Shown: positions 31,150 through 54,949, counted from the stretch's first letter. The stretch: 64,000 nucleotides of DNA from Iphione sp. A-MEVVRFRX5 (GCA_976226885.1 OZ320319.1:45818001-45882000), one strand, 5' to 3'. Program-made: numbers and translations. The notes: a model not told the origin generated them from the letters alone.

Positions 31150-31293
31150 TGTTGCATTCTCTTAAATGATGCTAGAGTTACTTAAGAGAAGAGTGATTGA
31201 GTTGAGCAGCTTTATTCCATCTTGGATATAGGGCAGAGAGAGAGTACACACAGAGTGATGACATCATCAGATCACGTATGTAAACATGTAACA
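31150..31293 (-). repeat. 3' LTR (144 bp)
   Basis: TGTT...AACA; matches 36057-36181; purine tract AAGAGGGAGGA adjacent on the minus strand. Confidence 0.93.
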
Positions 31294-31641
31294 TCCTCCC
31301 TCTTAAGGAGATGAGGATCTATAGCTTTGAGGACTATTATAAATCAAAACATGTTTCGTAATTCAAATGTCAAGCTTTAAGATCTTTAAAGTTCATGTTG
31401 TCTTCTCATAGTCTTAGCCATTCATAGGCTCAAGTCCTTAGCCTGCGGGTAATCAGTGTATAAGTTGCTTAAGTAAGAAAACTAATAATATAACTGACTT
31501 TTACGTAAGGATATATGATTAAGTTTGCTTATCACTATAAGAACTAAAATTGGGGTCTGGTAGACTGCCAGATCACCCAAGGCACGTTGGCACAGGGATT
31601 ATTCTGCCCTTATGTGCCAAGTGTCAATGAGGCATCTTCGC

Positions 31642-34600: not shown

Positions 34601-35725
34601 TGATCGGATGCTTCAGGCTCCTGTCCCACATCTCCAGTGTGCTTGTTGGAGTATCAAGCTTAGCCTTCTTGACATGCTTGAGTGGAATGAGGTTCACTGA
34701 TGCGCCAGAGTCTACTTGGAACTTGACTGGTTTTCCAGCCACTGTCATCTTTGCATAGATGAGTTTCTTTAGACGGCCCTTCACACTGTTGACCTCGCTC
34801 ACTCCATTTATTTTGTATTCATCACTGTCGGTTTCTTCAAAGTCTTCCTGATCTACGGCATTCACTTTCTTCTTGCTCTTCTTGCACACAACAGCAAAGT
34901 GGTTTCGTCCGCCGCAATCGTTGCACTGGCTCCCCCAGGCTGGACATGACTCCTTCTTGTACTCATGTTTCTGGCCACAGAACTTGCAGGTTCTGCTCTT
35001 CCGGCTCTTTGGTTTGTCCTTGTCTACCTTCCCTGATCCCTTCTCGTGCTTTGACTTTGGCTTTGGTTTCAACCTTGGCCTCACACCATGGACTTCATCT
35101 CCTCCCTTGGTGTTCATCTGTTTCATCTTCGCCCCTGCAGCTTCATTCGCTCGGCAGATGTCAATGCAGCGGTTTAGGGTAAGGTCCTGTATCTCCAGTA
35201 GCTTTTTTCGGGTCTCGTCATCTCAGAACCCATCACGAGTCGATCGCGTAGAAGTGTGTCGGTCAGGCAGTCACAAAAGTTACAACTTTTTCTCAGGTAG
35301 CGCAAAGCTGTGACGTAGGCATCGAAGTTCTCATCCGTGGCCTGCTGTCTTTCGTTGAACTTGTATCGTTCATATGTCTCGTTCAGTTGCCCGATGATAT
35401 GCTGATCAAACTTTGCTATTATCTGCAGTACCGTGCGATCGTCTTCATTGGCTTCGTCCTCGAATGCAAACCCGTTATACACACGCAATGCCTCGGGTCC
35501 GATTGAGTTCAAAAACATTGCGGTTTGATATTTTCTCTGTTGTGTGTCTAAATTGGAGATTATGGCATAGTTTCTCCACTGCTGTTTCCACAGGTTCCAA
35601 TTTTCGACTTTCCCAGCCTGTAAATCTAGGTGCCCTGGGGCCTTTATCCCGGGTATGAATTTGGCATGTGCCGCTTCAGCACCTCCCGCCTCGGCTCCCT
35701 CTCCTTGCTCCTGGTTCCCCGGCAT
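31642..35725 (-). pseudogene. gag-pol of the Mag-like element
   Basis: VDSGAS protease, VADD RT, RNase H with a deletion, integrase TDIF...SDNG...ESAV; frameshift near 35170 and in-frame TGA at 32572-32574. Confidence 0.92.
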
Positions 35726-36046
35726 GGCGACTTACTTACTCACTGACCGTGGTTTGTATTGTGACTAACGGGCACAACTGACTAACCAGTGCTGGATTGG
35801 TAAATACAGGTAAAACTTCTGTCTAGCTGTTTTAACAGGGCATAATAATCGTGGAACACTCTCTCAGGGTGGCAGTTACACAGTAGAGTTACTCTTCTTG
35901 GGATAGGAGCTGGGTTGAGCACATGGCATGGCTTCTGGCTTCAGGCCCTCTGCCACACAACAGCCTTTCCTCACTCTCTTAACAGAAGAAATAGAAAAAG
36001 CTTCCTACTCACAGTTTCTTCATGCCCTTCCCAGTCCTTTTACCTT

Positions 36047-36056
36047 GCTGCCACCA
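36047..36056 (-). promoter_or_regulatory. PBS (tRNA-Leu-like, 10 nt)
   Basis: TGGTGGCAGC directly after the 5' LTR. Confidence 0.75.
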
Positions 36057-36171
36057 TGTTGCATTCTCTTAAATGATGCTAGAGTTACTTAAGAGAAGAG
36101 TGATTGAGTTGAGCAGCTTTATTCCATCTTGGATATAGGGCAGAGAGAGAGTACACACAGAGTGATGACAT

Positions 36172-36303
36172 CATCAGATCATCAGCCACACATATCACAC
36201 CCTCTAAATCCTGGATGCAGCTGTGTAGCTTCCTGGCAAAGATCTCTGATGATACGCTTGTCCCGAAAGGCAATCTCAACCATCGGTATCGGCCATGTGG
36301 GGT
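36172..36303 (-). repeat. 132-bp copy of the internal RT segment 33840-33971 replacing the outer end of the 5' LTR
   Basis: One mismatch seen (36264 C vs 33932 T); 10-bp junction microhomology CATCAGATCA. Confidence 0.92.
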
Positions 36304-37470
36304 AGCACAGTGAGTTGGCATAACTAGAGGTCTTTGGTTTAGTTACGACCCCTCTCATATCCCGTCCATGGCACATCCTAGTCGCCTGATCCAGTGGGAT
36401 AAGACCCAATTTGATCTGTTTGTGGATGGCGCAGATAGCCTACCCTTCATCAGCACCAAGTTAGCCACCCTTGCCACGCCAAACTGTCTTTCCAGTCTCA
36501 CAGATGAGTGAAATTCCTTTCCTTGGAGGCATACCGAGCACACCTACTTAGGTGTACCTGTAGGTCCACTACTGCTGCACATGGTAGGGCACTCCAGAGG
36601 GCAGCATTGTATTGAGATACCACCAAGGACTTGAAGAGCAGCAGTCTAGCCCTGAAGGGCAGGAAGCTCTTTGTTCTGCCTACCTTCAGGGCCAAGCCCC
36701 ATGTCTGTCTCTTCACCTCCGGCAACTTTCGCGCATCTTAAGTCTTCCGTCCAGCTTATACCCCAACAGTGAAGTGGTGGCCTCATACTTCAATTGCACC
36801 CCATTAAGAGTCCGGTCAAGTGCTATCCCATGTGCCCTGCCTTGGGTACTATAGGCACACTTGGCCTCACTGAGGACCAAGTTTTCATTCTTACACCACT
36901 TGGATACGGCAGTCAGAGTCAGCATCGCCGTTTGTCACAACCGTAGCAAGTCACGAGCAAAGACCACTACAGACAAGTCGTCTGCATAGATAACCGCTCT
37001 GGTGTCAGCTGGTAGCACGTCCACTACTGTGTTAATGGCTAGATTGAATGCCACAGGGCCGAAAATTGACCCCACTGGCACCCCTTGTTGCAGTATCAGT
37101 TGGGTGGACGACACTCCATTGCAGCAGATGAACTGCCTCCGTTTGCTCAGGTATGACCATATCATCCTTCTAATGCGTGGACCGGCCCCCATGTCCATCA
37201 GTCTCCGGAGGACAGTGGCATGCGCGACCAAGTCAAACGCCTTCTTTACGTCGAATGTTTGGAGGCATGTATTCAGTCCCTTGTTGATAAGATCTTGCAC
37301 CGGTTGGTGAGGCTGACGATGGCTGTCTCCGTCCCTCGGCCTGCTCAGAAACCATGCTGACTGCTAGTTATGGCGCCTTGACCCTCCAGCCTCCGCAATA
37401 GTTCCTTTGTGAACCATCGTTACAAATCTTCCCCGGAATGGGTAGGATTGATACAGGTCGGAATTGTGAA
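36302..37470 (-). mobile_element. CR1/L2-group LINE RT remnant
   Basis: FDVKKAFDLVAH, QGVPVGSIFGP, IYADD; frameshifted; related to the LINE at 50700-52660. Confidence 0.85.
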
Positions 37471-38169: not shown

Positions 38170-38580
38170 GTAGGGATCACCAATCAAGAGGGAGAAAGAG
38201 GGAAAGAGTCAGAGGGAGGGAGGAATAGAGAAGGAGGGAGAGTGAGAAGGAGGAAGGGAGCGAGGCAGGGAGGGAGGAGAGAGAGACAGGAAGAGAGGGA
38301 GAGCAAGGGAGAGAGTGANNNNNNNNNNNNNNNNNNNNNNNNNNNNNNNNNNNNNNNNNNNNNNNNNNNNNNNNNNNNNNNNNNNNNNNNNNNNNNNNNN
38401 NNNNNNNNNNNNNNNNNNNNNNNNNNNNNNNNNNNNNNNNNNNNNNNNNNNNNNNNNNNNNNNNNNNNNNNNNNNNNNNNNNNNAGGAGAGAGTGAGAGG
38501 GAGAGAAATATGGAGAGAGAGAGAGGGAGAGAGGGCAGGAGGAAGGGAGAGGGATGGGAGCGAGGGAGAGGAGAGAGAGA
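38170..38580. repeat. GA-rich low-complexity tract containing an assembly gap (38319-38484)
   Basis: Direct inspection. Confidence 0.9.
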
Positions 38581-39767: not shown

Positions 39768-39978
39768 TGTTGTGCGGAGCAGTAATATACTCCACACTGA
39801 GTTACTCAGCACGCTCAGCATGTAAGTTACTCCTCAAGTTAGCTCCGCACGTTATGACTGTATGTATAAAAGCAAGTGCGTGCGGAGCTTACTTCAGTTG
39901 CGTTCTTACCTCTCAGCAATAAACATCTAAACCTTACTTGGGAGTCTGCCTCCAGTATGTTAAGGTCTGGCCGTAACA
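39768..39978 (+). mobile_element. Solo LTR (211 bp) with ATAT TSD
   Basis: TGTT...AACA; ATAT at 39764-67 and 39979-82; TATAAAA at 39865, TCAGTT Inr at 39894-99, AATAAA downstream. Confidence 0.88.
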
Positions 39979-39982
39979 ATAT

Positions 39983-40314
39983 CTTGAATCAACTGTTCTG
40001 CCATCTTCACTGTCATGTTGTCATCGTAGTAGTAGTAGTTGCTGCTGTTGTTGTTGTTGTTGTTGTTCTGTTGCTACCATGTTGGTCCCCTGCTGTGATG
40101 TTGGGTGGGTAGGCTTTGTGGTTGAGGGACTGGTCTTGTGTGGTGGTTGGTCAGCAGGTTGGGGTGCTATCCTGGTTGCAGAAGCGGACCTCCTCTTCTG
40201 GGCCTGCAATGAGAACAGCAACTGGTAAGGTAACTCTCCCAGTATCTTTAGGGTGTGCCATTCTGTCAGGACATGCAAGCACCCAGTTCTTGACCCTCTT
40301 GACTGTCAAGATAT
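39983..40314 (-). mobile_element. Old host repeat, possibly a Tx1/L1-type ORF1 remnant, continuing at 49198-49620
   Basis: Removing the Gypsy rejoins AYLTPDDDILTVKRVK...TGRVTLPVAVLIAGPEEEVRFCNQDSTPTC; family assignment weak. Confidence 0.35.
40026..40067. repeat. Compound (GTA)(GCT)(GTT) microsatellite
   Basis: Direct inspection. Confidence 0.9.
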
Positions 40315-40501
40315 TGTTGCGGGCTCCGCTCACCGGAGCCCGCTGTTGGCGGAAATTGTGAAATTGGGGCTCCGCCCGGAGTAGCATTCTGTATATAAGT
40401 CGGGCCGGGCGGAGCTTCGTTGTCATTTGTGTCCTACCCTTAAAGTAATAAACTTCATCAACTGTTATCTGGAAGTCATGTCTCTTCGATCGGGGCGAAC
40501 A
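40315..40501 (+). repeat. 5' LTR (187 bp)
   Basis: TGTT...AACA; TATATAA at 40392, TCATTT Inr-like at 40423-28, AATAAA at 40447-52. Confidence 0.97.
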
Positions 40502-41740
40502 ATTGGTGGCAGCGGTGGGATCCCTGCCCTAGGGGCTGAGGCAGAGGAAGAGGCGGAAGTGGTCAAGCTCCGGGCGGAGTCGGCGGAGCCTGCGGAGCCC
40601 GCCGAGTCAGCGGAGGTCGCCGAGGAGCTGCCGGAGCCCGCCTGGCTCCGCCCGGAACCCGCCACTGACTGGGACGCACAGTCTATGGAGGGGGATCAGC
40701 CTCTGGGTAGCGGGGATGCCCAAACCAGAGATGAGGTGGGGCATGGGGCTGACGAGGAAGAGAGAGAACACGGGGCCCCCACCTCATCCGCCCCACACAG
40801 ATCTAACGAGGACACTGATGACCACCCTCCTCCGGAGGAAGACGAAGGAGAGGGGGAGCCGACCGACCAGGCAGCCGAGCCGCTCTGGACTAGCTTTGTC
40901 CGGGAGCTGAGTTCCGCCCTCCGGCCGGAAGGAGGAAATAAGAGGAGTCTGGTGAAACCTGACACTTACGATGGGAGTACGCCCTTGCGGGACTTTCTAC
41001 AACATTTTGAGCTGGTGGCCCTGGCAAACCGTTGGGGGGCCGGGGAGAAAGCCATCCAGTTGGGCATCACTCTGCGGAAGTCGGCACGGGCGGTCCTACG
41101 GAGTTCGGGGATCGATGTGGAGAAGCCCCGAGCTTACCAGGAACTGGTGGCCGCCCTCACGGAGAGGTTCCAATCCAAGCATCAGACAGACGCATACATC
41201 CAGCAACTGAAGGGGCGTCGGCAGGGGAAGGCCGAGGCCCTAGCGGATCTTGCAGACGAAATTGAGCAATTGGTACAGCTGGCCTACCCTGAGGCGAAAG
41301 GGGCCTGGAAGGACCGGATGTGCCGCGAATACTATGTCGGGGCCCTCAGCAACGAGAAGGTTCGGAAGTGGGTGACCCAGGCCCGAGTGGCAACCTTTCG
41401 TGAGGTGTTGTCAGCATCGCAAGTAGCGGAGTCTTATTATCAGCATAAGTCCGAAAGGGTGGGACCCAAGCGCGTGCATAAGCTGGAAGTGGCCACCGAA
41501 GAGGCTTCGACCAACAAGTCCACCCCCAAGACCGAGGCTACAGCGGCAGGCTTCGAACGGCTGGAGCTCCTGCTTCAACAGTTATTGGCAAGCCAACAAG
41601 GGGCGGAGAAAGAGAATCGCCGGCCGAACAACAAGAAATGCTTCAACTGCGGGGAGCTCGGGCATTTCAAGCGCAACTGTCCCCAGCCCTTGAAGGAGCA
41701 ACCGTCGGGAAACGGGGCAGCGGCCGCCCCTCGCCAGTAG
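40478..41740 (+). CDS. gag: Gag (about 420 aa, one CCHC knuckle)
   Basis: KPDTYDG capsid-like region and CFNCGELGHFKRNC; first AUG after the predicted TSS is 40478 (alternative start 40685). Confidence 0.9.
   Translation: MSLRSGRTIGGSGGIPALGAEAEEEAEVVKLRAESAEPAEPAESAEVAEELPEPAWLRPEPATDWDAQSMEGDQPLGSGDAQTRDEVGHGADEEEREHGAPTSSAPHRSNEDTDDHPPPEEDEGEGEPTDQAAEPLWTSFVRELSSALRPEGGNKRSLVKPDTYDGSTPLRDFLQHFELVALANRWGAGEKAIQLGITLRKSARAVLRSSGIDVEKPRAYQELVAALTERFQSKHQTDAYIQQLKGRRQGKAEALADLADEIEQLVQLAYPEAKGAWKDRMCREYYVGALSNEKVRKWVTQARVATFREVLSASQVAESYYQHKSERVGPKRVHKLEVATEEASTNKSTPKTEATAAGFERLELLLQQLLASQQGAEKENRRPNNKKCFNCGELGHFKRNCPQPLKEQPSGNGAAAAPRQ
40504..40521 (+). promoter_or_regulatory. PBS, tRNA-Leu
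   Basis: TGGTGGCAGCGGTGGGAT is complementary to the tRNA-Leu 3' end (...AUCCCACCGCUGCCA-CCA). Confidence 0.92.
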
Positions 41741-44700
41741 AGAGGGCGGCCAGCCTCCAACCCCATTTGGAAGAACATCTCAGGATGATTCGGCTGTCTT
41801 GTGAGCGGGAGGTCACTCTGGAAGGGGAGAGCGGCCCCGCAACAAACATCACGCTACCTAGTACAATCGACGGTCGGATAGTCCCCTGGTTAGTGGATAC
41901 CGGGGCGTCACTGACCCTGCTGTCGGAGGAAGTCGCCGACACCCTGTCGCTCGGGGAGTTGGAGCCGACAGTGGGGCGGATTTTGTGTGCAGACGGGAAA
42001 CCCCTACGAGTGAAGGGAAGGACGAGGTTGAAGGCGAGTTTTCAAGGGATCGAGTTGGAAGTCAAAGCCTGGGTTGCCCAAATCGACTGCCCCGCCATCT
42101 TGGGGCTGGATACGCTTCGCAAATGGAAAGCACAGGTGGACACGGAGGGGGCCGCGCTGCGGGTGCGGGTCCCCGAGGACAACGGCGCGAGTGGATGCCG
42201 GGCAGAGTTGGCGGAAGATTGCCACCTGGACGGGAGGAGCGCGGTGCAGGCCCCCTTGCGATGGACGGGGCTAGAGACCGACACTGGACCCGTGGTGGTG
42301 GAAGCCTCCCCCGAGTGGGAGGGTCGCTCGGGGATGCTACTGGCACGGACGGTGTGCCAGGCGGGAAGTCAGTCCGGAGTGGCAGAAATAACCAACCCTG
42401 GCCCCGTGGGGCGTCGACTGAGAAAAGGAACCGTTGTCGGCAGGGTCCAGCGGGTGGACGGGCCAGTGCGGGTCGTCCCGGAGAGCGAAGGGGTGGCGGA
42501 CGAAGACGTGGAGCTAGGACCAGCGCTCAGGACCCTGCTGGAGCGCCTGCCACCCATGACTACCGATGAGCGGCAGGGGGTCGAACAGATGCTGCGGCGT
42601 AACGCGCGCTGTTTCCAAGAGGACGGGCAACCGCTTGGGCACACTGACACGGTCCAGCACCGGATCGACGTACAAGGACACGCCCCCATCCGGCAGAGGG
42701 TACGCCGCCTCCCCCCCGCGAAGAAAGCACTAGTACAGCAGGAGGTGAATCGGATGCTGCAGCAAGGAGTGCTAGAGGCCTCTACCAGCCCGTGGGCGTC
42801 GCCCGTGGTTCTGGTCCGGAAGAAGGACCAATCTTGGCGATTTTGCATTGACTACCGCGCCCTTAACCGAGTAACGAAGAAGGATGCCTACCCCCTTCCG
42901 CGGATCGATGAGACACTGGACGCGTTGGAGGGGGCACGTTTCTTCTCGGCGATTGACCTGGCCAGTGGCTATTGGCAGGTAGGAGTGAGACCGGAGGGCC
43001 GAGAGAAGACGGCTGTCTGTACTCCAGGTGGGCTTTACCAGTTCCGGGTCATGCCCTTCGGACTGTGCAATGCGCCCTCCACCTTCGAGCGGTTGATGGA
43101 GGCCGTGCTCCGGGGCCTGGTTGGGCAGTCCTGCCTGGTCTACCTGGACGATGTGATCGTGATAGGGAGGACGGTAGAAGAGATGACCCGCAGGCTCGAT
43201 GACGTCTTCAGCCGCCTGGGGGAGGCCGGGCTTAAAGTAAAACCGCAGAAGTGTCAGCTGTTCCAGGGGGAGGTGGCCTATCTGGGGCACCGCGTGTCGG
43301 AGGAGGGGGTCCAGCCCGACCCTGAGAAGATCCGGGCCATTCAGGAGTGGCCTCCCCCGCGCTGTATCACGGAGTTGAGGAGCTTCATCGGACTGTGCTC
43401 CTACTACAGGAGCTTCGTGGAGGGGTTCGCCATGCTGGCGGCCCCCCTGCACGGACTCTTGGAGAAAGGACAGGAGTATCGCTGGGACGCCGAATGTCAG
43501 CAGGCGTTTGAACAGTTGAAGGAACGGTTGGTGACCGCCCCCGTCTTGGCGTACCCGCGGCCAGAGGGACAGCTAGTGCTGGACACCGATGCATCGGCGG
43601 CTGGGATCGGAGCCGTACTGTCGCAGGAGCAGCAAGGACGGGAACGGGTGTTGGCCTACGCCAGTCGAAGTCTTGCGCGCCCGGAGAAGAACTACTGCGT
43701 CACCCGGAAAGAACTGTTGGCGGTGGTCTTCGGTCTGCGTAAGTTTCGCTCTTATGTTGGAGGGCGAAAGGTGGTAATCCGGACGGACCATAGTTCCTTA
43801 CGTTGGCTATGCAGCTTCAAGGAACCCGAGGGACAGTTGGCCCACTGGCTCGAAGAGGTCCACTGTTATGACTTGGAGGTGATACACCGCCCGGGAAGGA
43901 AACACGGGAACGCTGATGGCCTCTCGCGAGTCAAGTGCCCCCAGTGCGGACGGGACCCGGAAGAGGATCTGCCGACCCTGGGGCAAGTTGCTACGGTGTC
44001 AGTGGCCCCGGCCGCATTGGACTCCTTAGCCCAAGCCCAGAAGGCTGAGCCCGAAGTGGCGGCCCTCATTCGAGCCTGGGAGGCGGAGGAGCCTCTCCCT
44101 GGACTGACTGGTAGTGATTCCCCGGAGGGGAGGTGGCTGAAGAGTGAGTCGCGGCGGTTGAGGATGAAGGACGATCTGCTTTGTCGGCGTTGGGAGGCGG
44201 AGGACGGAACGCTGTACTATCAGGCTTACGTGCCCCAGCCATTGAGATACGACATCTGGCGTGAAGTCCACGCAGGAGCGTTGGGAGGGCATCTCGGCGC
44301 TGAGAAGACAGAAGGTGCCCTTCGCCGGAAATATTGTTGGCCAGGACTCCGACGTGATGTGGGGCGTTGGGTGAAGGCTTGCCGGGAGTGCCAGGAACGA
44401 CAAGATCCAGCTCGCCGACACCGGGCTCCCCTGCAGCTTCGGGTGGCCCCGGCCCCGTGGGAGTTCGTGGCCGTGGACGTGTGCGGCCCCTTCCCCGAGA
44501 CAGAGCGAGGAAACAAGTACATCATTGTGGTGGCGGATCACTTTACGAAGTGGACGGAGGCATTCCCCACTCCGGAAGTCACGGCGGCGAAGACGGCAGA
44601 CGTCCTACTCCGAGAGATCATCTGTCGGTACGGCCCCCCCCGTATTCTTCATTCCAACCAGGGGCGGAACTTCGAGGCGGCGGTAATGCGGGAACTTCTA

Positions 44701-47700
44701 CAGCTGTTGGGCATTCAGCGGTCGCGCACCACCCCATACCATCCCCAGAGTGATGGAGTCGTCGAAAGGTTCAACCGCACTCTCCTAGGAATGTTGGCCA
44801 AGGTAGTCCGAGAAGATCAATCCGACTGGGACCTCCGAGTGCCCTTCGTCCTGGCGGCCTACCGGGCTACCCCGCACTGTACCACCGGGTTCTCTCCGAA
44901 TTGGTTAACCCTACAACGCGAGACTACGCTTCCGGTGGAGTTGATGGTGGGCAGCCCCCGAGACGAGCCCCGATCGGCTTCCGACTATGCCAAGCAGATC
45001 AGGGAGCGCTACATTCAAGGCCACCAGCTAGCCCGGCGTCACCTACAGAAGTCGGCCGAGCGTCAGAAGGATTTGTACGATCAGCGAGTTCGAGAGCAAG
45101 AATTCGACGTTGGCGATCAAGTTTGGGTCTACTCACCAATAAAGAAGAAGGGGCGGTCCCCCAAATTGCAAAGTCGCTGGTTAGGACCGTGGACGGTTCA
45201 AGCCAGGCTCAGTGCTGTCATCTACCGCATCTCTCGAAACCAGAAGACTCGGGTTGTCCACGCCGATCTGCTAAAGAAAGCGGTCTCTCCTAGTTCGGAG
45301 GAAGAAGAAAGACTCGGGCGAGTGTGTGTCGTCACCCTGATGCCGGACGCGGATGCGGCCCCGGAGGGGGCGGGCCCACCTGCTGTGCCCCCGCCCCGTT
45401 GGTACCGCTGTCGACCGAAGACAACGGGCCAGCCGCCGGTGGTTCCCCACAAGAGCACCAGGGACAGCAGGATGCCCCCGCCTCAGCAACGCCCTCCAAT
45501 ACGACGGATCCCCCAAGGCTGGGTGGACTTGGTGGCCCGGGAACTCCGTCTCCTGAGCGACCGGACTTGCCAGGTCCTGCTCCAGTCGCGGGAAGTCGCG
45601 GGACGAAAGACAGGAGAGAAGCCAGGCCCCCGCCCGGGGGCCTACCGCCGGGCATGGCAGAGACTGCGAGGAATCAGGAGGCGATTGCGGAGACAGTATG
45701 GAGGACGCGCGGTACAGCACCTGGTAGAGACCCTCTGGAGGAAGATCGGAGAGAGAAGACATCCCGCTTGGGGTCGACGACAGTTGAAGACGTCGAGCGG
45801 AACTCGCCCGGGGCCCGAGGCGGAGCACGCCCTAACGGGGCGGAGCCCGCCCAGAGCCCGAGCTCCGGGCGGAGATTATACCGCACTCCGCCGCCATCCA
45901 GCCAATCAGAAACAGACGCGGGAAAGTTCGACCAATCAGCGACTGGCGGAGCTAGCCCTGCAGGGATATAAGCTGGCGGCCTTAGAGGGGGCGATTCATT
46001 CCGTCCATCGCCGTGCTCCGCCCACCCAGAGATACTTCCCGAATATTCCCCGCCCGGAATTGAGTACGTCAGCGGAGGTTTCCGCAGAATTCGACCGGAG
46101 TCCGACTAAGTCGCTGCCGGAGCTCGCCGACCAGCGGAGCTCGCCACCTGAAGTCAGCGGAGCTCGCTCGGCGGAGGTCGCCCTACCGGAGCCCGAGAAG
46201 ACCATGACGTCCGGGGGAAGAGCCCAGTATTGCCAGTACTGTGGCTACATCTCTGACAAGCCGGGCAATTTTGATAGACACATGCTAACCCATGGGAAGC
46301 AAGGGTTTGTCCGCCGCTGTCCGGTGCCCCGTTGCCAGGGGGCACACTTCGGCCGCCGGGATGACTTCCGGCGGCACCTGGAGAACAAGCACAAGCAGGA
46401 CGCCGACAACCCCCTCGTGCTGGGCCAGGATGTAGACTTGGAGTTCATCGACCTGGCCAGCGGCCAGAACGTGTCTGTCCCTGAGAGTCGCCGAGAGGAG
46501 TACCAGCGGCAGTTGAAGGTGGAGGCGTATGAACGGGAGAAGGAAGCAGCCATGATTCGGGGGGAGGCCCCCCCACCGCGACCCAAGCTAGCCCGGAAGC
46601 CCCCCCGGGGAAGGAAGGCGTCGGCTGCCGCAGGGCGCCCTCCCCCTCCCCCCCGGGACGACGACCCAGAGGTGGACGAGGACGTGGAGGAAGAGACGGG
46701 AGTTACGGAGGGGCCCCGCCTGCGCCCCCGAGCCGGGCGCGGGGGACAGGTCTCCTCCACCGTGGCCACACCAGGGGCAGGCCGCCCACCAGTCACTCCG
46801 GGTTCCTCGGCCTCAGTAGACATTCCGCTGTTCGGGCTCGACGTGTCACCGGAGGCTCCAGAAGGACGGATCGGCCGCAAGGTCCGCAAGGCTGCGGGGA
46901 AAGCGGCCAGCCGAGGTACCTCAGCAGGGGAGACGGCCGCCGTTCCTACACCAGCGAAGCCGGCCGCGCAGGGGTCCACTTCTGCCGTCTCCACGCCGGG
47001 GGCCGCTCGGGTGCGCGGCCTTCCTCCCACCAGATCCCGACCCGCCGAGTCATCAGGGGAGTGGCCGACCCCCTCCACCCCTGGGAAGGACTTGGACTTC
47101 CAGGCCATGCGGGACGAGGCCGATCGAAGGAAGAGGAGGTACCAGCCGCAGACGTCTCCTGTCACCCCGGCCAGTCTCCCCTCACCCGCGAAGAAGGTCG
47201 CCAACATCACGTCCTCCACGATGTCGCCACTACATCGGGCGGTGATTGCCGCGGGGATTCGAGACCGCACCCCCCAGTCCACCCCCGCCTCCGCTAGTTC
47301 GTCCTACAGCGAAGCGGCACGGGAGCTGGACGCGTGGCTAGGCGAGGAGTGGGAGAACGTGGAGAGGGAGGAGCGGCCCACGGACGTGGTGGTGATTGGG
47401 TCGGATCCAGAGTCCGAGGACGAAACCCAGGTGGAAGACGCTACCGCCGCCTCTGAGCCGCTGGCCGAGCAGCTCAGCGCGAGCCCGGGGACCCCCTGTG
47501 GGCGCATCCACTATGCCCGGCTGGATGTGGCAGGGGGGGCCCCGGCAGATGATGCAGCAGCTGAGGACGTTCCCTTGTCTGAGGGGGAGGCCGCCCTCAC
47601 CCTGGCGGAGCTTGCAGAGGAAGAGCTCCGCCCGGAGCTCCCGGCGATAGAGACTGAACCTGGCGGAGCTCGCCCCGAGCCGGCGGAGCCCGCCCCTGCC

Positions 47701-48723
47701 CCGCCGCCGGAGACCACCACTCAGCCCTCGGAGCCTGGCCGGGCTCCGCCGATGGGGCCCCAACCCGAGGCGCCCGGGCAGCCGCTGACGCCAGCGGAGC
47801 CCGACGCTGGAACTGAGCCTACCCCCCCGGTACTCCCGGGACGGCGCATGGAAGCAGGGGCAGGGGAGACCCTGCCCAAGGAGATCCCCCCGGCACCCCC
47901 GGGACGGCGAGGGGAGGAGCCGGCACCTGTCCAGCCGGACCCTCCCGTGGAGATCCCCCCGGAGCTTCCGGGACGGCGCGCAGCAGACAGGCCAGACGCT
48001 CTGGCCCCTACCGAGGAACTCCCCCCGGGGCCCCCGGGACGGCGAATTGAGGCGGAGCCCGATGCTGGGGCTCCCCCTCAGGATGTCCCCCCGGCACTCC
48101 CGGGATGGCGGATGGATGAAGGGCCCGGGGACGAGGCCCCGGGCCCGGCCCTCCCCCCGGCACTCCCGGGACGGCGACTGCCGGCGACTGGAGGCGGGAC
48201 TGGCGCACCGGCTCAACCCTTGGCTACCAGTACTCCCGTGGGGGACCCCCCCGGAGCGGCCCAACCGCGGATAGGGCCGGCCCTGGCGGGCCCCGACCGT
48301 CGGGCTGAAGTGCGGCCCGGAGCCCGCAGACAGCTCCTGTTGGACCCTGCCACCGTGCCGGTGGCGGTGACCCGTTGGGCGCATGCCCGAGTGGTCACCC
48401 CCAGGACCTCACCCCCTGCCGGGTGGCGTATTGTTACGGCGGAGGGGACTGCCACCGTGACCCCTCAAAGGGACCATATTCGTGCTAGGTTCCGGCAGGG
48501 GGTGCAGTTGCTATTACGGACAGCCGACCCTGTGGATGCGGAGGAGCCGGGGCACTGGCTGCAGGACAGAGGGATTGCCGATCCCAGCCTGGACATCTCT
48601 CAGGTCTCCTCCGAACTGTCCTCTCGCCTATTGGAGCCCGAACGAGTGGAGTTGTCGTTGGAGGAAGAGTTCCAGGTGGTGGCCAGGCCAGTACAGGCCC
48701 CGGCCGCAGCTGCAGAGCGCTGA
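41638..48723 (+). CDS. pol: Pol (PR-RT-RH-IN) with a ~1150-aa C-terminal extension; -1 frame relative to gag
   Basis: LVDTGAS, YLDD, DTDAS, integrase HHCC and D-S(D>N)QG-E region, SH3-like tail ending near 45280; the frame stays open to 48723. Confidence 0.95.
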   Translation: MLQLRGARAFQAQLSPALEGATVGKRGSGRPSPVERAASLQPHLEEHLRMIRLSCEREVTLEGESGPATNITLPSTIDGRIVPWLVDTGASLTLLSEEVADTLSLGELEPTVGRILCADGKPLRVKGRTRLKASFQGIELEVKAWVAQIDCPAILGLDTLRKWKAQVDTEGAALRVRVPEDNGASGCRAELAEDCHLDGRSAVQAPLRWTGLETDTGPVVVEASPEWEGRSGMLLARTVCQAGSQSGVAEITNPGPVGRRLRKGTVVGRVQRVDGPVRVVPESEGVADEDVELGPALRTLLERLPPMTTDERQGVEQMLRRNARCFQEDGQPLGHTDTVQHRIDVQGHAPIRQRVRRLPPAKKALVQQEVNRMLQQGVLEASTSPWASPVVLVRKKDQSWRFCIDYRALNRVTKKDAYPLPRIDETLDALEGARFFSAIDLASGYWQVGVRPEGREKTAVCTPGGLYQFRVMPFGLCNAPSTFERLMEAVLRGLVGQSCLVYLDDVIVIGRTVEEMTRRLDDVFSRLGEAGLKVKPQKCQLFQGEVAYLGHRVSEEGVQPDPEKIRAIQEWPPPRCITELRSFIGLCSYYRSFVEGFAMLAAPLHGLLEKGQEYRWDAECQQAFEQLKERLVTAPVLAYPRPEGQLVLDTDASAAGIGAVLSQEQQGRERVLAYASRSLARPEKNYCVTRKELLAVVFGLRKFRSYVGGRKVVIRTDHSSLRWLCSFKEPEGQLAHWLEEVHCYDLEVIHRPGRKHGNADGLSRVKCPQCGRDPEEDLPTLGQVATVSVAPAALDSLAQAQKAEPEVAALIRAWEAEEPLPGLTGSDSPEGRWLKSESRRLRMKDDLLCRRWEAEDGTLYYQAYVPQPLRYDIWREVHAGALGGHLGAEKTEGALRRKYCWPGLRRDVGRWVKACRECQERQDPARRHRAPLQLRVAPAPWEFVAVDVCGPFPETERGNKYIIVVADHFTKWTEAFPTPEVTAAKTADVLLREIICRYGPPRILHSNQGRNFEAAVMRELLQLLGIQRSRTTPYHPQSDGVVERFNRTLLGMLAKVVREDQSDWDLRVPFVLAAYRATPHCTTGFSPNWLTLQRETTLPVELMVGSPRDEPRSASDYAKQIRERYIQGHQLARRHLQKSAERQKDLYDQRVREQEFDVGDQVWVYSPIKKKGRSPKLQSRWLGPWTVQARLSAVIYRISRNQKTRVVHADLLKKAVSPSSEEEERLGRVCVVTLMPDADAAPEGAGPPAVPPPRWYRCRPKTTGQPPVVPHKSTRDSRMPPPQQRPPIRRIPQGWVDLVARELRLLSDRTCQVLLQSREVAGRKTGEKPGPRPGAYRRAWQRLRGIRRRLRRQYGGRAVQHLVETLWRKIGERRHPAWGRRQLKTSSGTRPGPEAEHALTGRSPPRARAPGGDYTALRRHPANQKQTRESSTNQRLAELALQGYKLAALEGAIHSVHRRAPPTQRYFPNIPRPELSTSAEVSAEFDRSPTKSLPELADQRSSPPEVSGARSAEVALPEPEKTMTSGGRAQYCQYCGYISDKPGNFDRHMLTHGKQGFVRRCPVPRCQGAHFGRRDDFRRHLENKHKQDADNPLVLGQDVDLEFIDLASGQNVSVPESRREEYQRQLKVEAYEREKEAAMIRGEAPPPRPKLARKPPRGRKASAAAGRPPPPPRDDDPEVDEDVEEETGVTEGPRLRPRAGRGGQVSSTVATPGAGRPPVTPGSSASVDIPLFGLDVSPEAPEGRIGRKVRKAAGKAASRGTSAGETAAVPTPAKPAAQGSTSAVSTPGAARVRGLPPTRSRPAESSGEWPTPSTPGKDLDFQAMRDEADRRKRRYQPQTSPVTPASLPSPAKKVANITSSTMSPLHRAVIAAGIRDRTPQSTPASASSSYSEAARELDAWLGEEWENVEREERPTDVVVIGSDPESEDETQVEDATAASEPLAEQLSASPGTPCGRIHYARLDVAGGAPADDAAAEDVPLSEGEAALTLAELAEEELRPELPAIETEPGGARPEPAEPAPAPPPETTTQPSEPGRAPPMGPQPEAPGQPLTPAEPDAGTEPTPPVLPGRRMEAGAGETLPKEIPPAPPGRRGEEPAPVQPDPPVEIPPELPGRRAADRPDALAPTEELPPGPPGRRIEAEPDAGAPPQDVPPALPGWRMDEGPGDEAPGPALPPALPGRRLPATGGGTGAPAQPLATSTPVGDPPGAAQPRIGPALAGPDRRAEVRPGARRQLLLDPATVPVAVTRWAHARVVTPRTSPPAGWRIVTAEGTATVTPQRDHIRARFRQGVQLLLRTADPVDAEEPGHWLQDRGIADPSLDISQVSSELSSRLLEPERVELSLEEEFQVVARPVQAPAAAAER
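41707..41751 (+). promoter_or_regulatory. -1 ribosomal frameshift signal
   Basis: G GGA AAC in the gag frame, 8-nt spacer, stem GGCCGCCC / GGGCGGCC. Confidence 0.8.
45902..46001 (+). promoter_or_regulatory. Predicted internal Pol II core promoter inside pol
   Basis: CCAATCAG at 45902 and 45932, TATAAG at 45967, TCATTC Inr with +1 A at 45998 (31 bp from TATA). Confidence 0.7.
46204..48723 (+). CDS. Putative stand-alone 839-aa C2H2 zinc-finger accessory protein (same frame as pol)
   Basis: First ATG after the predicted internal TSS (accATG); C-x2-C-x12-H-x3-H at 46231-46293 and C-x4-C-x13-H-x4-H at 46318-46392. Confidence 0.72.
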   Translation: MTSGGRAQYCQYCGYISDKPGNFDRHMLTHGKQGFVRRCPVPRCQGAHFGRRDDFRRHLENKHKQDADNPLVLGQDVDLEFIDLASGQNVSVPESRREEYQRQLKVEAYEREKEAAMIRGEAPPPRPKLARKPPRGRKASAAAGRPPPPPRDDDPEVDEDVEEETGVTEGPRLRPRAGRGGQVSSTVATPGAGRPPVTPGSSASVDIPLFGLDVSPEAPEGRIGRKVRKAAGKAASRGTSAGETAAVPTPAKPAAQGSTSAVSTPGAARVRGLPPTRSRPAESSGEWPTPSTPGKDLDFQAMRDEADRRKRRYQPQTSPVTPASLPSPAKKVANITSSTMSPLHRAVIAAGIRDRTPQSTPASASSSYSEAARELDAWLGEEWENVEREERPTDVVVIGSDPESEDETQVEDATAASEPLAEQLSASPGTPCGRIHYARLDVAGGAPADDAAAEDVPLSEGEAALTLAELAEEELRPELPAIETEPGGARPEPAEPAPAPPPETTTQPSEPGRAPPMGPQPEAPGQPLTPAEPDAGTEPTPPVLPGRRMEAGAGETLPKEIPPAPPGRRGEEPAPVQPDPPVEIPPELPGRRAADRPDALAPTEELPPGPPGRRIEAEPDAGAPPQDVPPALPGWRMDEGPGDEAPGPALPPALPGRRLPATGGGTGAPAQPLATSTPVGDPPGAAQPRIGPALAGPDRRAEVRPGARRQLLLDPATVPVAVTRWAHARVVTPRTSPPAGWRIVTAEGTATVTPQRDHIRARFRQGVQLLLRTADPVDAEEPGHWLQDRGIADPSLDISQVSSELSSRLLEPERVELSLEEEFQVVARPVQAPAAAAER

Positions 48724-48740
48724 GTTGTTTACCGTTATGT

Positions 48741-48945
48741 TGGTCAGTACAGACCTCTTTACTCAAAGTAAGGTTTTTCCAGTAATAAGAAGATGGTTCA
48801 CGGATTTGTTGGCTGGTCAGTACAGACCTCTTTGCTCAAGTAAGGTTTTTCCAGTAATAAGAAGATGGTTCACGAATTTGTTGGTTGGTCAGTACAGACC
48901 TTTTTGCCCAAGTAGGGTTCAGCAGTAAGAAGATAGTCGATGGAT
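48741..48945 (+). repeat. 72-73 bp tandem repeat x3 in the element's 3' UTR
   Basis: TGGTCAGTACAGACCT at 48741, 48814 and 48886. Confidence 0.9.
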
Positions 48946-49006
48946 TTATTTAAGATTTATTCAAGTAGTAGTGGCTCAGGGACTGAGCCCTCTTGGGCGG
49001 GGGTAA

Positions 49007-49193
49007 TGTTGCGGGCTCCGCTCACCGGAGCCCGCTGTTGGCGGAAATTGTGAAATTGGGGCTCCGCCCGGAGTAGCATTCTGTATATAAGTCGGGCCGG
49101 GCGGAGCTTCGTTGTCATTTGTGTCCTACCCTTAAAGTAATAAACTTCATCAACTGTTATCTGGAAGTCATGTCTCTTCGATCGGGGCGAACA
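49007..49193 (+). repeat. 3' LTR (187 bp)
   Basis: Identical to 40315-40501 by eye; preceded by GGGCGGGGG PPT. Confidence 0.97.
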
Positions 49194-49739
49194 ATATCAT
49201 CATCTGGTGTCAGGTAGGCCCGTTCTTTACATAGTAGAGAGGTCAGTACGGCCTCTCGGTGAGCCCCATTAGCTGAGAGGTGATGGTTCTTTATACACCA
49301 TACCCAGGTTTCTATGTTGCATAGCAAACTGGTGCAACAGAGGCAGTGGCATCACGGATGTGTAGGGTGAGAGGCCTGCCCTTCCCAAAAGAGCAGCATC
49401 CCTCACACCATCACTGAGACATTGGTTCTTTGCCAATGTCTTGAGTGGTTTCCCAGATTGTCTCAGTTGGCAGTGCAAGGATATCCCACACTGGTCGATA
49501 GCCTCATGGGTGCTACATTGGATTCTGTCTTCTTGTATCCCATGGTTATCTGCTTTGTGATGTTCCTGGGCTGGCTTCCACATGGTTCTGGGGCCGTTTC
49601 CTGAATGCAAAAATTTAATCATGGGTATTAGGGTACCGTAATTAAGTTAAGAACATTCTTAATATTTAATCTGCATTCTTAGATTGTAGGATGTAGTTTT
49701 GTGTCCTGAATGGGGCCCTGAGATTCCCTAAACCCTTTT

Positions 49740-50600
49740 ATGACCCTTACAGGGCTGCCTGATGCTGTCATGGTTCCTGTGTCCATGATGTGGCTGACCA
49801 TGGCTGGCATGGGGCTGCCTATGGCTGACATGGAGCCATCTGTGGTCATTATGGTGTCATCTATGACCACCACAGGACTGTCTTTTGCTGTCATGGTTCC
49901 TGTATCCATAACAGGGCTGGCCATGGCTGGCATGGGGCTGGCCATGGCTGGTATGGGACTGGCCATGGCTGGTACAGGGCCATCTGTGGTCATTATGTTG
50001 CTGTCTGTGACTGTTACCCAGTCACAGACAGCATCATGATGGCCACAGATGGCCCTCTACCAACCATGGCCAGCTCCATGCTAGCCATGGCCAGCCATAT
50101 CACAGATGCAGGGACCATGACAGCAACACACCCTATGACATTCACAGGCAGCACCATGATAGCCAAAGATAGGCCAATGCCAGGCATAGGTAGCCCATGT
50201 TAGCCATGGTCAGGCCATGCCAGCCATGGCCAGCCCAATTATGGACACTGAGACCAAGACAACAAAAGGCAGCCCTGTGACAGTCACAGACAGCACCATG
50301 ATTGCCACAGATGGCCCTATGTCAGCCATTGCCAGTCCTATGCCAGCCAAGGCCAGCCCCATACTAGGAATGGCCAGCCCCATCATGATCACAAGGACCA
50401 TGGCAGCAACAGACAACCCTGTCATGTTCATAGATGGCACCATGATGGCTACAGATGGCCCTGTGCCAGTCATAGGCAGTCCATGGCAGCCATGGCCAGT
50501 CCCATGCCAGCTATGGCCAGCCCCATACCAGCCATGGCCAGCCCCATCATGATCACAGGGACCATGACAGCAACAGACAGTTCTATGATGGTCATAGATG
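49740..50600. repeat. Fold-back minisatellite (21-bp subunits in ~130-150 bp units; orientation flips at 50016)
   Basis: GGCTGGCCATGG units on the left, CCATGGCCAGCC on the right; perfect 15-bp stem 49999-50013/50019-50033. Confidence 0.85.
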
Positions 50601-50699
50601 ACACTACTCTTAATCTTACCCTTCTAGTGAGATTAAATAATGCATGGTTAACTGCTATGCAGGAACACATTTGGGGTGATTAAACAGTGGTACCATGAT

Positions 50700-53600: not shown

Positions 53601-54479
53601 TCATTGTCTTGCCATGCATGTTCCCTCTGTACATAGGTTGCGTATCAACAATGACAACTCTGTATTGCACATGAGACGTTGAATAAACGCTTTTGAAATT
53701 GAAATTGAATTGCAGTACCAAAAATGCATTCTGGAATGCTGCTACTGCGATTAACTGCTCTACCGCAATTGACTTTTCTAAGACTGCTCTTAAGTTGCAT
53801 TCAGGAACCGGCCCCTGGTCCTGATGTCTTAGCAGCGAGTGATGCCTCAGTTGTGATGGTGACTGGTAAAGATTGAGGACCATTCATCCATGCATTATTG
53901 CTTATACCCCTGGGTAAATAGGCAGCTTTCATGATACTCAAGATTTGCCGTATCAGGGATCTGTGGAAATCTCAGATCACTTGTAATGTCAACCTCACAA
54001 TGCCCCGCCCCCTCCATGTTATCCCAGAATATTCCATTGGTGTGTTTCTCCAGGGTCTGATCAAACCTTCATGGTGTAACCAGTTGGCGAAACTATATAT
54101 AATCGCCATTTCTTGGAGCAATCTTAAGTTCTTAGGTTAAAAAAATAAGCATCATATGAATCGTCAACCAACTCAGAGACATAAACAACAGAGAGAAGAC
54201 TGGCAAGTTCATCATTCATAAAACTGACTTTCTAGGACCTAAAATGAATTGGCCTCGGTTGAACTGGGTGAAAAAGTATAAAGGCCAGACAAACCCTACC
54301 TATGGCTGAAGGACCACAGAGTCAAAGGTCAGAGACTGCCGTTACCTCAGCACAGAAGCAAGATTGCAAGTAACAAATGTCGGTGCTCACTTGAGAAGGC
54401 TGTTGAACATTGCTGCTTCACCAGATGATGAACTAATCATGTGACTATGGGATCAAGCGAAAACATTGGCTGTGTGGGA

Positions 54480-54840
54480 AGTCATGATGCTATAGTCTGA
54501 TAAGATACACTCAGTATTACAGTTGAATAGGGTAAGTCATGGTGCCACGGTCTGACAAGAGGTACTTGGTGACCCTGATACTGGTGTTAAGTGTGCAAAG
54601 TCGTGGTGCCACAGTCTGATAAGATGTACTTAGTGACCTCAGTCTTACAGTTGAATAGGATAAGTCGTGGTGCCATGGTCTGATGAGATGTACTTGGTGA
54701 CCCTGGTACTGGTGTTAAGTGTGCAAAGTCGTGGTGCCACAGTCTGATAAGATGTACTTGGTGACCTCAGTCTTACAGTTGAATAGGATAAGTCGCGCTG
54801 CCACAGTCAGAGATAGTGTACTCAGTGACCCTAAGACTGG
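54480..54840. repeat. Minisatellite, ~61-bp monomers arranged as ~122-bp dimers
   Basis: GTCGTGGTGCCA..GTCTGA.AAGA.GTACTT.GTGACC repeated with alternating tails. Confidence 0.85.
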
Positions 54841-54949
54841 GTTTGAGGTGCCCCAATGGGAGAAACCGTGGCACCACTGTTGGTTGTGGCAAAGAAAAAG
54901 TTAAAGGTGACCTTGGGCCCTGGTAATCCAGGCCCCTATTACTTTGTAG

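Follow-up and report, generated by a model that had tools for sequence, protein, structure and literature searches.

Does a retrotransposon whose two encoded zinc fingers are predicted to read GCGGAG, the hexamer that frames the TATA box of its own LTR, regulate itself? The question is raised by an element within a 64,000-nucleotide stretch of the genome of Iphione sp. A-MEVVRFRX5 (GCA_976226885.1 OZ320319.1:45818001-45882000), hereafter the window, whose features are collected in Table 1. Absent from the first-pass annotation, which had proposed an autoregulatory circuit, are the fusion of the fingers to the pol frame, the full 839-aa ORF3 with its internal promoter-like region, the abundance of GCGGAG in the interior of the element and the solo LTR beside it.

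Table 1. Features of the element and of the adjacent solo LTR, in coordinates of the window
Feature	Position (nt)	Strand	Description
Solo LTR, related family	39768-39978	+	211 bp; ATAT duplication; 70% identical to element LTR
Target-site duplication	40311-40314 (5' copy); 49194-49197 (3' copy)		ATAT; flanks element LTRs
5' LTR	40315-40501	+	187 bp; TG...CA ends; U3 ~40315-40424
Palindrome, 10-bp arms	40319-40328 / 40334-40343		Contains CTCCGC (40324) and CCGGAGC; 5-29 nt from U3 end
11-bp inverted repeat, GCTCCGCCCGG / CCGGGCGGAGC	40369-40379 / 40405-40415		Brackets TATA box; holds GCGGAG 40370 (-) and 40409 (+)
5' LTR signals	40392-40398; 40423-40429; 40447-40452		TATA; Inr TCATTTG; AATAAA
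gag	40478-41740	+	ATG within U5; N-terminal (AEP)n 9-nt repeat; C-terminal CCHC zinc knuckle
PBS, TGGTGGCAGCGGTGGGAT	40504-40521	+	Presumably matches tRNA-Leu 3' end; identical 18-mer in L001, L002, L004, L007, L008
Five-site GCGGAG cluster	40574-40653		Plus strand; gag N-terminal coding repeat; ~150 nt downstream of LTR Inr
pol core	41638-45534	+	-1 frame relative to gag
pol domains	41857-42121; 42814-43296; 43483-43869; 44230-45279		PR; RT; RNase H; IN
Conserved pol end RRIPQGWVDLV	45502-45534	+
Spacer	45535-46203	+	Open in pol frame; weak coding signal
Ten GCGGAG sites in spacer	45820-46171		All three reading frames
Putative internal promoter in spacer	45902 and 45932; 45965-45972; 45996-46002		CCAATCAG (twice); GATATAAG; Inr TCATTCC; consensus strings only
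ORF3	46204-48723	+	839 aa; in frame with pol
Finger 1; finger 2	46231-46293; 46318-46392	+	N-terminal end of ORF3
ORF3 tail			Pro/Ala/Arg-rich; acidic patches aa 141-180, 381-410; basic clusters aa 225, 308
22-aa repeats in ORF3 tail	47803-48177
72-bp tandem repeat, ~3 copies	48741-48950	+	Between ORF3 stop and polypurine tract
Polypurine tract, GGGCGGGGG	48995-49003	+
3' LTR	49007-49193	+	Same three GCGGAG sites: 49016, 49062, 49101

The element, which the first-pass annotation had ended at 46392, runs from 40315 to 49193; it is a Ty3/Gypsy (Metaviridae) LTR retrotransposon, inserted very recently and still intact. It has TG...CA LTRs, a short target-site duplication, a PBS beside the 5' LTR and a polypurine tract beside the 3' LTR; the gag CCHC knuckle and the domains in PR-RT-RNase H-IN order all give Pfam matches above threshold, and the closest proteins to its pol are Ty3/Gypsy pols. 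No env was found in the element. As the two LTRs, each of 187 bp, are 100% identical and all ORFs are intact, the copy is young and probably competent.

The finger ORF described earlier does exist at 46204, but it has no upstream stop and lies in frame with pol, the two forming a single stop-free ORF of 2361 aa (41638-48723). The pols of relatives stop within a few codons of RRIPQGWVDLV, whereas the window copy reads on for ~215 open codons past this conserved end, for which we estimate a chance of ~0.003 at local GC. A codon-usage score favours the pol frame across 46177-48577 and 1147 codons beyond IN pass without a stop at 62-69% GC, which together indicate that ORF3 is coding. Outside the finger region no ORF3 homologue was found among 1.84e9 representatives and 5.8e9 clusters, and the best match of the finger region (E 7.8e-15) is to multi-finger proteins, a generic finger similarity only. 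The tails of ORF3 are not alignable among relatives, and in the window element the ~770 Pro-, Ala- and acid-rich residues that follow the fingers are probably disordered; judged from the predicted protein, two fingers and a long tail make up the plan of a DNA-binding transcription regulator.

Finger 1 (C-x2-C-x12-H-x3-H; K-1, G+2, N+3, R+6) has canonical spacing and passes Pfam zf-H2C2_5 (30.4 against a threshold of 27 bits), with Pro at +1 and without the conserved aromatic residue, while finger 2 (C-x4-C-x13-H-x4-H; R-1, D+2, D+3, R+6) has a non-canonical x13 spacing and no Pfam match. AlphaFold2 models both as beta-beta-alpha (pLDDT ~90 and 81-86) with helices that start at P20 and R52, which confirms the helix numbering; the residues are those first listed. 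The top Foldseek match is the Tramtrack two-finger/DNA complex and the other top matches are DNA-bound C2H2 arrays, at an E of only 0.03. Finger 2 (RRDDFRR) equals the engineered GCG module RSDDLVR at -1/+2/+3/+6, and finger 1 (KPGNFDR) equals the engineered GAC module DPGNLVR at +1/+2/+3/+6, but has K and not D at -1 (PMC7317221 Table 1, PMC5260015). These matches make the earlier GCG-GA reading an orthodox use of the code and support GCGGAG as the predicted target, the specificity of two fingers being 6 bp only. The tandem C2H2 pair is most like the Tramtrack domain (PDB 2DRP), its best fold match, and fingers of the Zif268/Sp1 type, with the helix of engineered GCG-reading modules in finger 2, differing from these in the extra hairpin residue (x13) of finger 2, in Pro at +1 of finger 1 and in a linker of 8 residues in place of TGEKP.

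The sites ascribed to the LTR were confirmed by coordinates, namely three copies of GCGGAG (40324 and 40370 on the minus strand, 40409 on the plus strand), near-matches to it (CCGGAG twice, GCGGAA once), the inverted repeat around the TATA box and the hairpin at 40319-40343. Three copies per LTR compare with 0.116 expected (P~1e-4 by dinucleotide shuffles, the hexamer being named in advance), and the predicted GCGGAG ranks second among the 163 distinct hexamers of the LTR, a chance of ~0.002-0.005. The hexamer is not special to the LTR, since among plus-strand hexamers it is also the most frequent in the interior of the element (24 copies, with 7.4 expected), where 17 of the 24 read GCG-GAG as Ala-Glu codons. 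The 7-mer GCGGAGC occurs 26 times in the window and only four times outside the element, three of these in the solo LTR, which carries GTGCGGAGC at 39774 (+), 39843 (-) and 39882 (+), the last two flanking its TATA box in the same aligned position and orientation as in the element. The lack of sites noted earlier for two LTRs described as Mag-like holds in the three other LTR-like repeat pairs of the window (31150/36057, 33840/36172 and 57424/62241), in which no GCGGAG was found. To all appearances this LTR family has a real cis-element in GCGGAGC, which looks functional.

The sites of the spacer fall in all three reading frames, which points to a DNA or RNA feature there and not to a peptide. 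CCAAT-, TATA- and Inr-like strings stand in the spacer at the right spacings, GCGGAGC adjoins the internal TATA as it does that of the LTR, and between 45997 and 46204 there is no ATG before the ORF3 start; similar strings lie directly upstream of ORF3 in L001 and L004. From the observed anatomy, motif enrichment, finger fold and clade distribution of ORF3 we propose, with a probability of roughly 45%, that the element-encoded fingers read GCGGAGC at the element's own promoters in a self-regulating loop, with ORF3 expressed from an internal promoter. The putative promoter at ~45900-46000 would most likely give rise to a subgenomic mRNA for ORF3, with 46204 as its first AUG; in the window copy, read-through from Pol could in addition yield ORF3 as the C-terminal part of a longer protein. 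Its fingers are the best candidate reader of GCGGAGC, and a loop in which they bind DNA would act on both the LTR and the internal promoter. One LTR site falls between TATA and Inr, so repression is as likely as activation. Methylation sensing through the CpG of the site, as first suggested, is speculative.

The analogy first drawn to foamy viruses (Spumaretrovirinae) gains in its architecture from the promoter-like strings in the window, L001 and L004, and fails for homology to Tas/Bel1. Both have an accessory gene 3' of pol. The virus has a second, TATA-type promoter inside upstream coding sequence (that of env), to which the putative internal promoter would correspond here, and a candidate motif at both this promoter and the LTR would permit a feed-forward or autoregulatory loop. 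Tas, however, lacks zinc fingers and shows no sequence similarity to ORF3, the window element is without env, and its site between TATA and Inr may mean repression. In its logic the proposed loop would resemble that of Tas and the foamy-virus internal promoter.

An ORF3 with N-terminal fingers recurs in six relatives from public assemblies (L001, L002, L003, L004, L005 and L007), placed 5-13 residues after the ORF3 Met, with pols that are 46-55% identical or in the same tree group, and on these sequences such an ORF3 is a feature of the clade. The covariation of fingers and LTR that had been put forward as a test is borne out in L004. Its fingers REDSLRR and HRKNLTR predict GTGGAN, since at +3 finger 2 has S where the window element has D, giving GTG and not GCG, and its LTR holds ~19 GTGGAG repeats and 5 GCGGAG; this match has a chance of ~0.02, independent of the window element, and the joint shift is an apparent compensatory change. 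It is not borne out in L001, L003, L005 and L007, whose predicted hexamers differ from their own LTR repeats (TCACGC, GACTAT, GCCTTCTGGCC and CCGGATC), and when enrichment is summed across six elements a permutation test shows no significance (p = 0.18). When predicted motifs are set against LTRs in a 6x6 comparison, only the window-window and L004-L004 pairs give top-10 matches, a result equalled in 24 of 720 permutations with a statistic chosen after the data were seen. The LTRs of L001, L002, L003 and L005 lack the motif G[C/T]GGAGC, and the L007 LTR has a single copy. We suggest only tentatively, as a possibility on the doubtful side, that a Ty3/Gypsy clade widespread in animals codes for a sequence-specific finger regulator of its own, expressed from an internal promoter, with residues that co-evolve with LTR motif arrays (D+3 with GCG in the window element, S+3 with GTG in L004). 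If true, this would be the counterpart, in a retrotransposon, of the transactivator circuits of complex retroviruses, and a case in nature of a finger and its binding site diverging in step.

The sites may instead be ordinary promoter-proximal sites of a host factor, an Sp/KLF GC-box or those of another CpG-motif reader, with ORF3 unrelated and the code match a coincidence. The classical GC-box core is GGGCGG, which two of the three LTR sites fit by reading GGGCGGAGC, TATA-flanking host sites are normal in LTR promoters, and the four finger-bearing relatives whose LTR repeats do not fit their finger code favour the same explanation. The core common to the LTRs of the element, the solo copy (GTGCGGAGC three times) and L004 (CGGTGGAGCAA) is nevertheless G[C/T]GGAGC and not GGGCGG, a general host site might be expected in the four LTRs from which the motif is missing as well, and the two code matches would have to arise at the low chances given above, all of which leads us to regard a host reader as unlikely. 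The GGGCGG core of an Sp1/KLF GC-box is not conserved across the sites: it is present in only two of the three LTR sites, the aligned sites of the solo LTR reading GTGCGGAGC and those of L004 GGTGGAGC; the retention of GCGGAGC in the solo LTR also argues against a GC-box. Short arrays of finger-protein sites are known from the Su(Hw) array in the 5'-UTR of Drosophila gypsy and from KRAB-ZFPs on LTRs and PBSs, and L004 with its 24 tandem sites past the TATA box resembles these, but those finger proteins come from the host, whereas the candidate reader here is a product of the element.

The fingers lie in frame with integrase here and, as C2HC plus C2H2 fingers in frame after IN, in 11 of the best 120 pol matches, L012 being a compact example, so an integrase-linked role is a serious rival, in which they would form a C-terminal DNA-binding extension that tethers the pre-integration complex, either at the end of the element's own LTR or at GCGGAG-type sites in the genome. 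The stop-free run from IN to the fingers and the site-bearing palindrome near the U3 end are consistent with it, as are the insertion of the element only 336 bp away from the solo LTR and its three GCGGAGC sites, and that of L003 inside a 166-bp satellite whose monomer contains L003's predicted GCGGAA, although these two proximities are single cases with a high chance expectation. R2 N-terminal zinc fingers recognise the integration target, and with these and the chromovirus IN chromodomain the module would share its attachment to an integration enzyme and its nucleic-acid- or chromatin-reading character, the fingers directly following IN in many relatives. In several close relatives, by contrast, the fingers belong to a separate ORF3 that has a start of its own and, in L001 and L004, a promoter-like region; in L001, L002, L004 and L005 it is set apart from pol by stops and 0.9-5 kb. 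Even fused forms keep the Met 5-13 residues ahead of the first Cys. The module also differs from that of chromoviruses in being a C2H2 pair, and the ATAT duplication common to four insertions (the window element, the solo LTR, L001 and L007) is unlike the predicted finger site and points to the integrase core as the part that chooses the target. On balance we consider a tethering function rather improbable.

C2H2 fingers can bind RNA, and ORF3 might be an RNA-binding accessory protein whose targets are the G[C/U]GGAG repeats of genomic or subgenomic 5' leaders, controlling export, translation or packaging like Rev or Cer1 CERV. The densest clusters, which are transcribed and on the plus strand, are those of the gag leader (40574-40610) and the ORF3 leader (46072-46171), together with the 24 sites of L004, every one of them past the first TATA box of L004. 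We hold this to be very unlikely, as the inverted repeat flanking TATA in untranscribed U3 suits double-stranded DNA recognition, the finger residues are those of DNA-reading modules and the strand bias in L004 is explained by tandem duplication. In favour of such a role, one Ty3/Gypsy element is documented to have an accessory export protein (PMC10309623). Non-env third ORFs after pol are shared by bdelloid Vesta and Juno, Cer1 (CERV) and plant Retand/Ogre; the abstracts on CERV and Retand describe no zinc-finger or DNA-binding ORF3, and the bdelloid paper, which reports lineage-specific gain and loss of ORF3s, says nothing about zinc fingers, C2H2 or internal promoters (PMC5408684).

That there is no circuit at all, with ORF3 a fast-evolving or decaying passenger, the motif copies products of local duplication and the code match post hoc, finds some backing in the unalignable tails, in finger 1 of L003, which is without its first Cys, in the 18% of shuffled LTRs in which some hexamer reaches at least three copies, and in both features having been seen by the earlier reader before the prediction was made, but it is most improbable given identical LTRs and intact ORFs, the persistence of a finger-bearing ORF3 across such diverged pol lineages and the conservation of the two TATA-flanking sites in the solo LTR.

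We propose, as the reading best supported by our observations, that GCGGAGC serves this LTR family as a functional cis-element and that its most likely reader would be the two zinc fingers at the N-terminus of ORF3, the third gene of the element. ORF3 would in this model bind DNA as a regulator and be transcribed from an internal promoter, with a single protein acting on both the LTR promoter and the internal promoter. The element is a complete Ty3/Gypsy LTR retrotransposon spanning 40315-49193, with a GC content of 59-69% against a background of 33-50%, and it belongs among the LTR retrotransposons that carry an accessory gene. As its LTRs are identical and its ORFs intact we consider the insertion very recent; the family is known here from this one copy. 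The primer-binding site (PBS) presumably corresponds to the 3' end of a tRNA-Leu, a gene for which was not found in a scan of the window and eight loci, and it is translated within gag (40478-40521), whose start codon sits inside U5. The gag N-terminus (40560-40650) carries (AEP)n Ala-Glu-Pro repeats, and AEPAP occurs independently in ORF3 of L002 (18990-19700), one of the pol relatives fetched from public assemblies.

Coordinates and remarks for features of the window and of the loci of pol relatives (L001-L012)
Feature	Position	Remarks
N runs in window	6280-6421, 38319-38484	
Solo LTR, related family, 211 bp	39768-39978	own ATAT duplication; 336 bp upstream of element
LTR pair	40315-40501, 49007-49193	187 bp each, identical
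ATAT target-site duplication		borders both LTRs of element
LTR TATA box	40392	consensus string; conventional spacing
LTR Inr	A at 40425	consensus string; conventional spacing
LTR AATAAA	40447	consensus string; conventional spacing
Primer-binding site, 18 nt		directly after 5' LTR
gag	ATG at 40478	within U5; CCHC knuckle at end
pol		-1 frame; PR, RT, RNase H, IN in Gypsy order
CCAATCAG boxes, two	45902, 45932	upstream of ORF3 Met; consensus strings
GATATAAG (putative TATA)	45965	consensus string
TCATTCC (putative Inr)	45996	~30 nt from GATATAAG, spacing as in TATA/Inr core promoter
Tandem repeats, 72 bp, ~three copies	48741-48950	between ORF3 stop and polypurine tract
Polypurine tract, G-rich		directly before 3' LTR
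Minisatellites, 21-bp and 64-bp periods	50011-50604 and 54472-54893	downstream of element, unrelated to it
L001 LTR repeat		TCACGC, x33
L002 LTR repeat		GCACCGGGC, about 10 copies
L003 LTR repeat		GACTAT, x18
L004 LTR repeat		24-bp unit with G[T/C]GGAGCAA, x24
L005 LTR repeat		GCCTTCTGGCC, about 5 copies
L007 LTR repeat		CCGGATC, about 29 copies
L012	9212-16666	compact; single 1873-aa ORF with C2HC + C2H2 fingers at end

The fingers do not occupy a free-standing ORF, a point that the first-pass annotation had not made; they share the reading frame of pol within a single, gag-independent ORF of 2361 codons (41638-48723). The conserved end of pol, RRIPQGWVDLV, falls at 45502-45534, and relatives stop within a few codons of it while the window copy stays open, with about 215 open codons following the conserved RRxPxxW..V end up to the ORF3 Met (45502-46203). 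Codon statistics support the pol frame throughout, weakly over 45277-46176 and strongly again from the fingers on; these statistics, together with 1147 stop-free codons, far beyond chance, led us to reject an open post-integrase frame arising from high GC alone. The fingers begin 9 residues after the Met at 46204, which opens the 839-aa region, and the tail that follows is rich in Pro, Ala, Arg and Glu and has 22-aa repeats as well as acidic patches and clusters of basic residues. When ORF3 (839 aa), the whole post-integrase extension and the 166-aa finger segment were searched for homologues, they gave only generic multi-finger proteins, and for this reason ORF3 was traced only through pol relatives, found by a search with the pol core, and the fetched loci of the nearest pols.

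L001, L002, L003, L004, L005 and L007, six loci that come from three ENA assemblies, have a third ORF in which C2H2-type fingers follow the initial Met at a distance of 5-13 residues; finger 1 of L003 is without its first Cys, and the ORF3 tails of the relatives are not alignable. The pol tree joins L001 and L002 to the window element as its sister group (100% support), L005 comes next, L003 and L007 form another clade, L004 is not placed, and L008-L010, which are without ORF3, fall outside. The PBS of L001, L002, L004 and L007 is identical to that of the window element. A C2HC and C2H2 pair in frame after the integrase was present in 11 of the best 120 pol matches. A compact element of that type, L012, has a different PBS, which we take to be Lys1,2-like, and an LTR without a repeat array. 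A finger module after the integrase therefore recurs within this Gypsy group, in three forms: fused, in frame with a spacer (as in the window) and as a separate gene. Both the frame shared with pol and the fused relatives have added weight to an alternative in which the fingers serve an integrase-linked role, one that would be compatible with DNA recognition of GCGGAG.

The putative internal promoter lies upstream of the ORF3 Met, and no ATG occurs from 45997 to 46204. A GCGGAGC is situated about 19 nt upstream of its TATA box, with eight more sites within about 210 bp downstream. A duplicated LTR-leader was considered for 45860-46260 and rejected, there being no overall homology and only GCGGAGC-type units in common. 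Strings for CCAAT/ATTGG, TATA and Inr also stand immediately upstream of ORF3 in L001 and L004, and in L002 (~18735-18758), L003 (~13585-13610) and L007 (~14170-14194) a pyrimidine tract and then CAG, resembling a splice acceptor, stand before ORF3; judged from these strings, some lineages may express ORF3 by splicing and others from an internal promoter. In L005 (~5478-5520) the stretch upstream of ORF3 has a TATA-like CATAAAAGG and then GCGGAGG and TCATCAC, an order that resembles the TATA-GCGGAGC-Inr of the window LTR.

The contact residues of both fingers are as first read: K-1, G+2, N+3 and R+6 in finger 1, with canonical C-x2-C-x12-H-x3-H spacing, and R-1, D+2, D+3 and R+6 in finger 2, with C-x4-C-x13-H-x4-H. 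Finger 1 scores above the Pfam zf-H2C2_5 threshold and finger 2 is undetected, while AlphaFold2, given 16 aligned two-finger units, models a beta-beta-alpha fold in both, with pLDDT of about 90 in the first and 81-86 in the second. The modelled helices begin at P20 and R52, which places position -1 at K19 and R51. A Foldseek comparison with the PDB ranks the two-finger/DNA complex of Tramtrack (2DRP) first, and the remaining top matches are all DNA-bound C2H2 arrays; the E-values are weak (0.03 and above), as expected for 60 residues. Among engineered modules RSDDLVR reads GCG and DPGNLVR reads GAC (PMC7317221 Table 1; PMC5260015). The window helices, RRDDFRR and KPGNFDR, have the base-contacting positions of those modules, except for K in place of D at -1. 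Under the standard code this exchange means that the 3' base read is G or T instead of C. The first-pass reading of the code, which gave GCG-GA(G/T), is orthodox.

The LTR holds GCGGAG at 40324 (-), 40370 (-) and 40409 (+), together with the near-matches CCGGAG (twice) and GCGGAA (once), all as first described, and both the inverted repeat of 11 nt that brackets the TATA box and the palindrome with 10-nt arms near the U3 end proved exact. Dinucleotide shuffles give an expectation of 0.116 for GCGGAG in the LTR (P ~1e-4 for a hexamer specified beforehand), and in 18% of shuffled LTRs some hexamer attains three copies. In the interior GCGGAG is the top plus-strand hexamer, with 24 copies against 7.4 expected, 17 of which encode Ala-Glu; within the leader of ORF3 it occurs in all three frames, which makes it a nucleic-acid feature there. 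Binding of RNA by ORF3 is one of the rival readings. Only four of the 26 GCGGAGC 7-mers in the window lie outside the element, three of them in the solo LTR, and GCGGAG is absent from the three further pairs of LTR-like direct repeats (31150/36057, 33840/36172 and 57424/62241; within 31150-36307 and 57424-62346). The solo LTR, 70% identical to the element LTR (z = 8.7 against shuffles), contains GTGCGGAGC three times, and the two copies bracketing its TATA box align exactly with sites of the element. GCGGAGC could alternatively consist of sites for a host factor; the Sp1 version of this rival lost weight and is rejected as the main reading, because the solo LTR and L004 share the GCGGAGC core and not GGGCGG. 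Were ORF3 the reader, the site between TATA and Inr suggests interference with pre-initiation complex assembly, and the acidic, proline-rich tail suggests activation.

The short LTR repeat differs in every ORF3-bearing relative, and one simple recognition code was used for the fingers of all elements. The fingers of L004 (REDSLRR and HRKNLTR) predict GTGGAN, and its LTR has 19 GTGGAG and 5 GCGGAG. Serine at +3 reads T in GNN modules, and relative to the window the fingers have S for D at +3 where the site has T for C, apparently a compensatory change at the sequence level. L007 predicts GCGGAA, which has only the central CGGA in common with its LTR repeat, although CGGAA occurs 10 times. In L001, L003 and L005, each with one non-canonical or damaged finger, the predicted hexamer does not match the LTR repeat, and L002, having a single finger, is uninformative. 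Across the 6x6 matrix of predicted motifs against LTRs the summed log-enrichment did not reach significance, since 18% of 720 permutations did as well (p = 0.18). Counted among the top-ten LTR hexamers, a statistic picked after the data were seen, the only matches in the whole matrix were the window and L004, each against its own LTR, with 24 of 720 permutations equal (p = 0.033) and an analytic chance per element of 0.002-0.025. As the two statistics disagree, the result on covariation of fingers and LTR hexamers is suggestive for the window element and L004, but as a rule for the whole clade it is negative. A coincidence of finger code and LTR motif is a further rival.

LTR retrotransposons are usually taken to rely on host transcription factors, and to our knowledge self-encoded DNA-binding regulators are known in complex retroviruses and not in Ty3/Gypsy elements. 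The nearest known system in function, for a role that we have read from sequence, is foamy virus Tas with its internal-promoter circuit, although ORF3 has no homology to Tas. Full-text searches of the literature turned up no previous account of Gypsy elements with a finger-encoding ORF3 or an internal promoter, and a survey of bdelloid ORF3s lists esterase, exonuclease and env-like types and no zinc fingers (PMC5408684). If ORF3 reads its own LTR, the element would govern its own copy number or tissue timing, finger and site could change together in each lineage, and many relatives with fingers after the integrase would need re-annotation. Such joint change of finger and site would provide a compact natural model of zinc finger-target co-evolution and would mirror the arms race of host KRAB-ZFPs. 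Whether or not the circuit is right, a clade-wide post-integrase finger gene with a putative internal promoter, for which no earlier description was found, is easily tested.

L003 is inserted (target-site duplication AAAC) in a long array of a 166-bp satellite (L003 1-5913 and 16691-23186), whose monomer holds GCGGAA, the prediction for its sister L007, which also fits the NCGGAA of L003, at a high chance expectation. An ATAT duplication is common to four insertions, the window element, the solo LTR, L001 and L007, which suggests that this integrase lineage prefers certain target sites. Three of the four are preceded by AAG, giving AAGATAT before the TG of the LTR (window 40304-40314 and 49194-49197; L001 7366-7376; L007 5407-5417).
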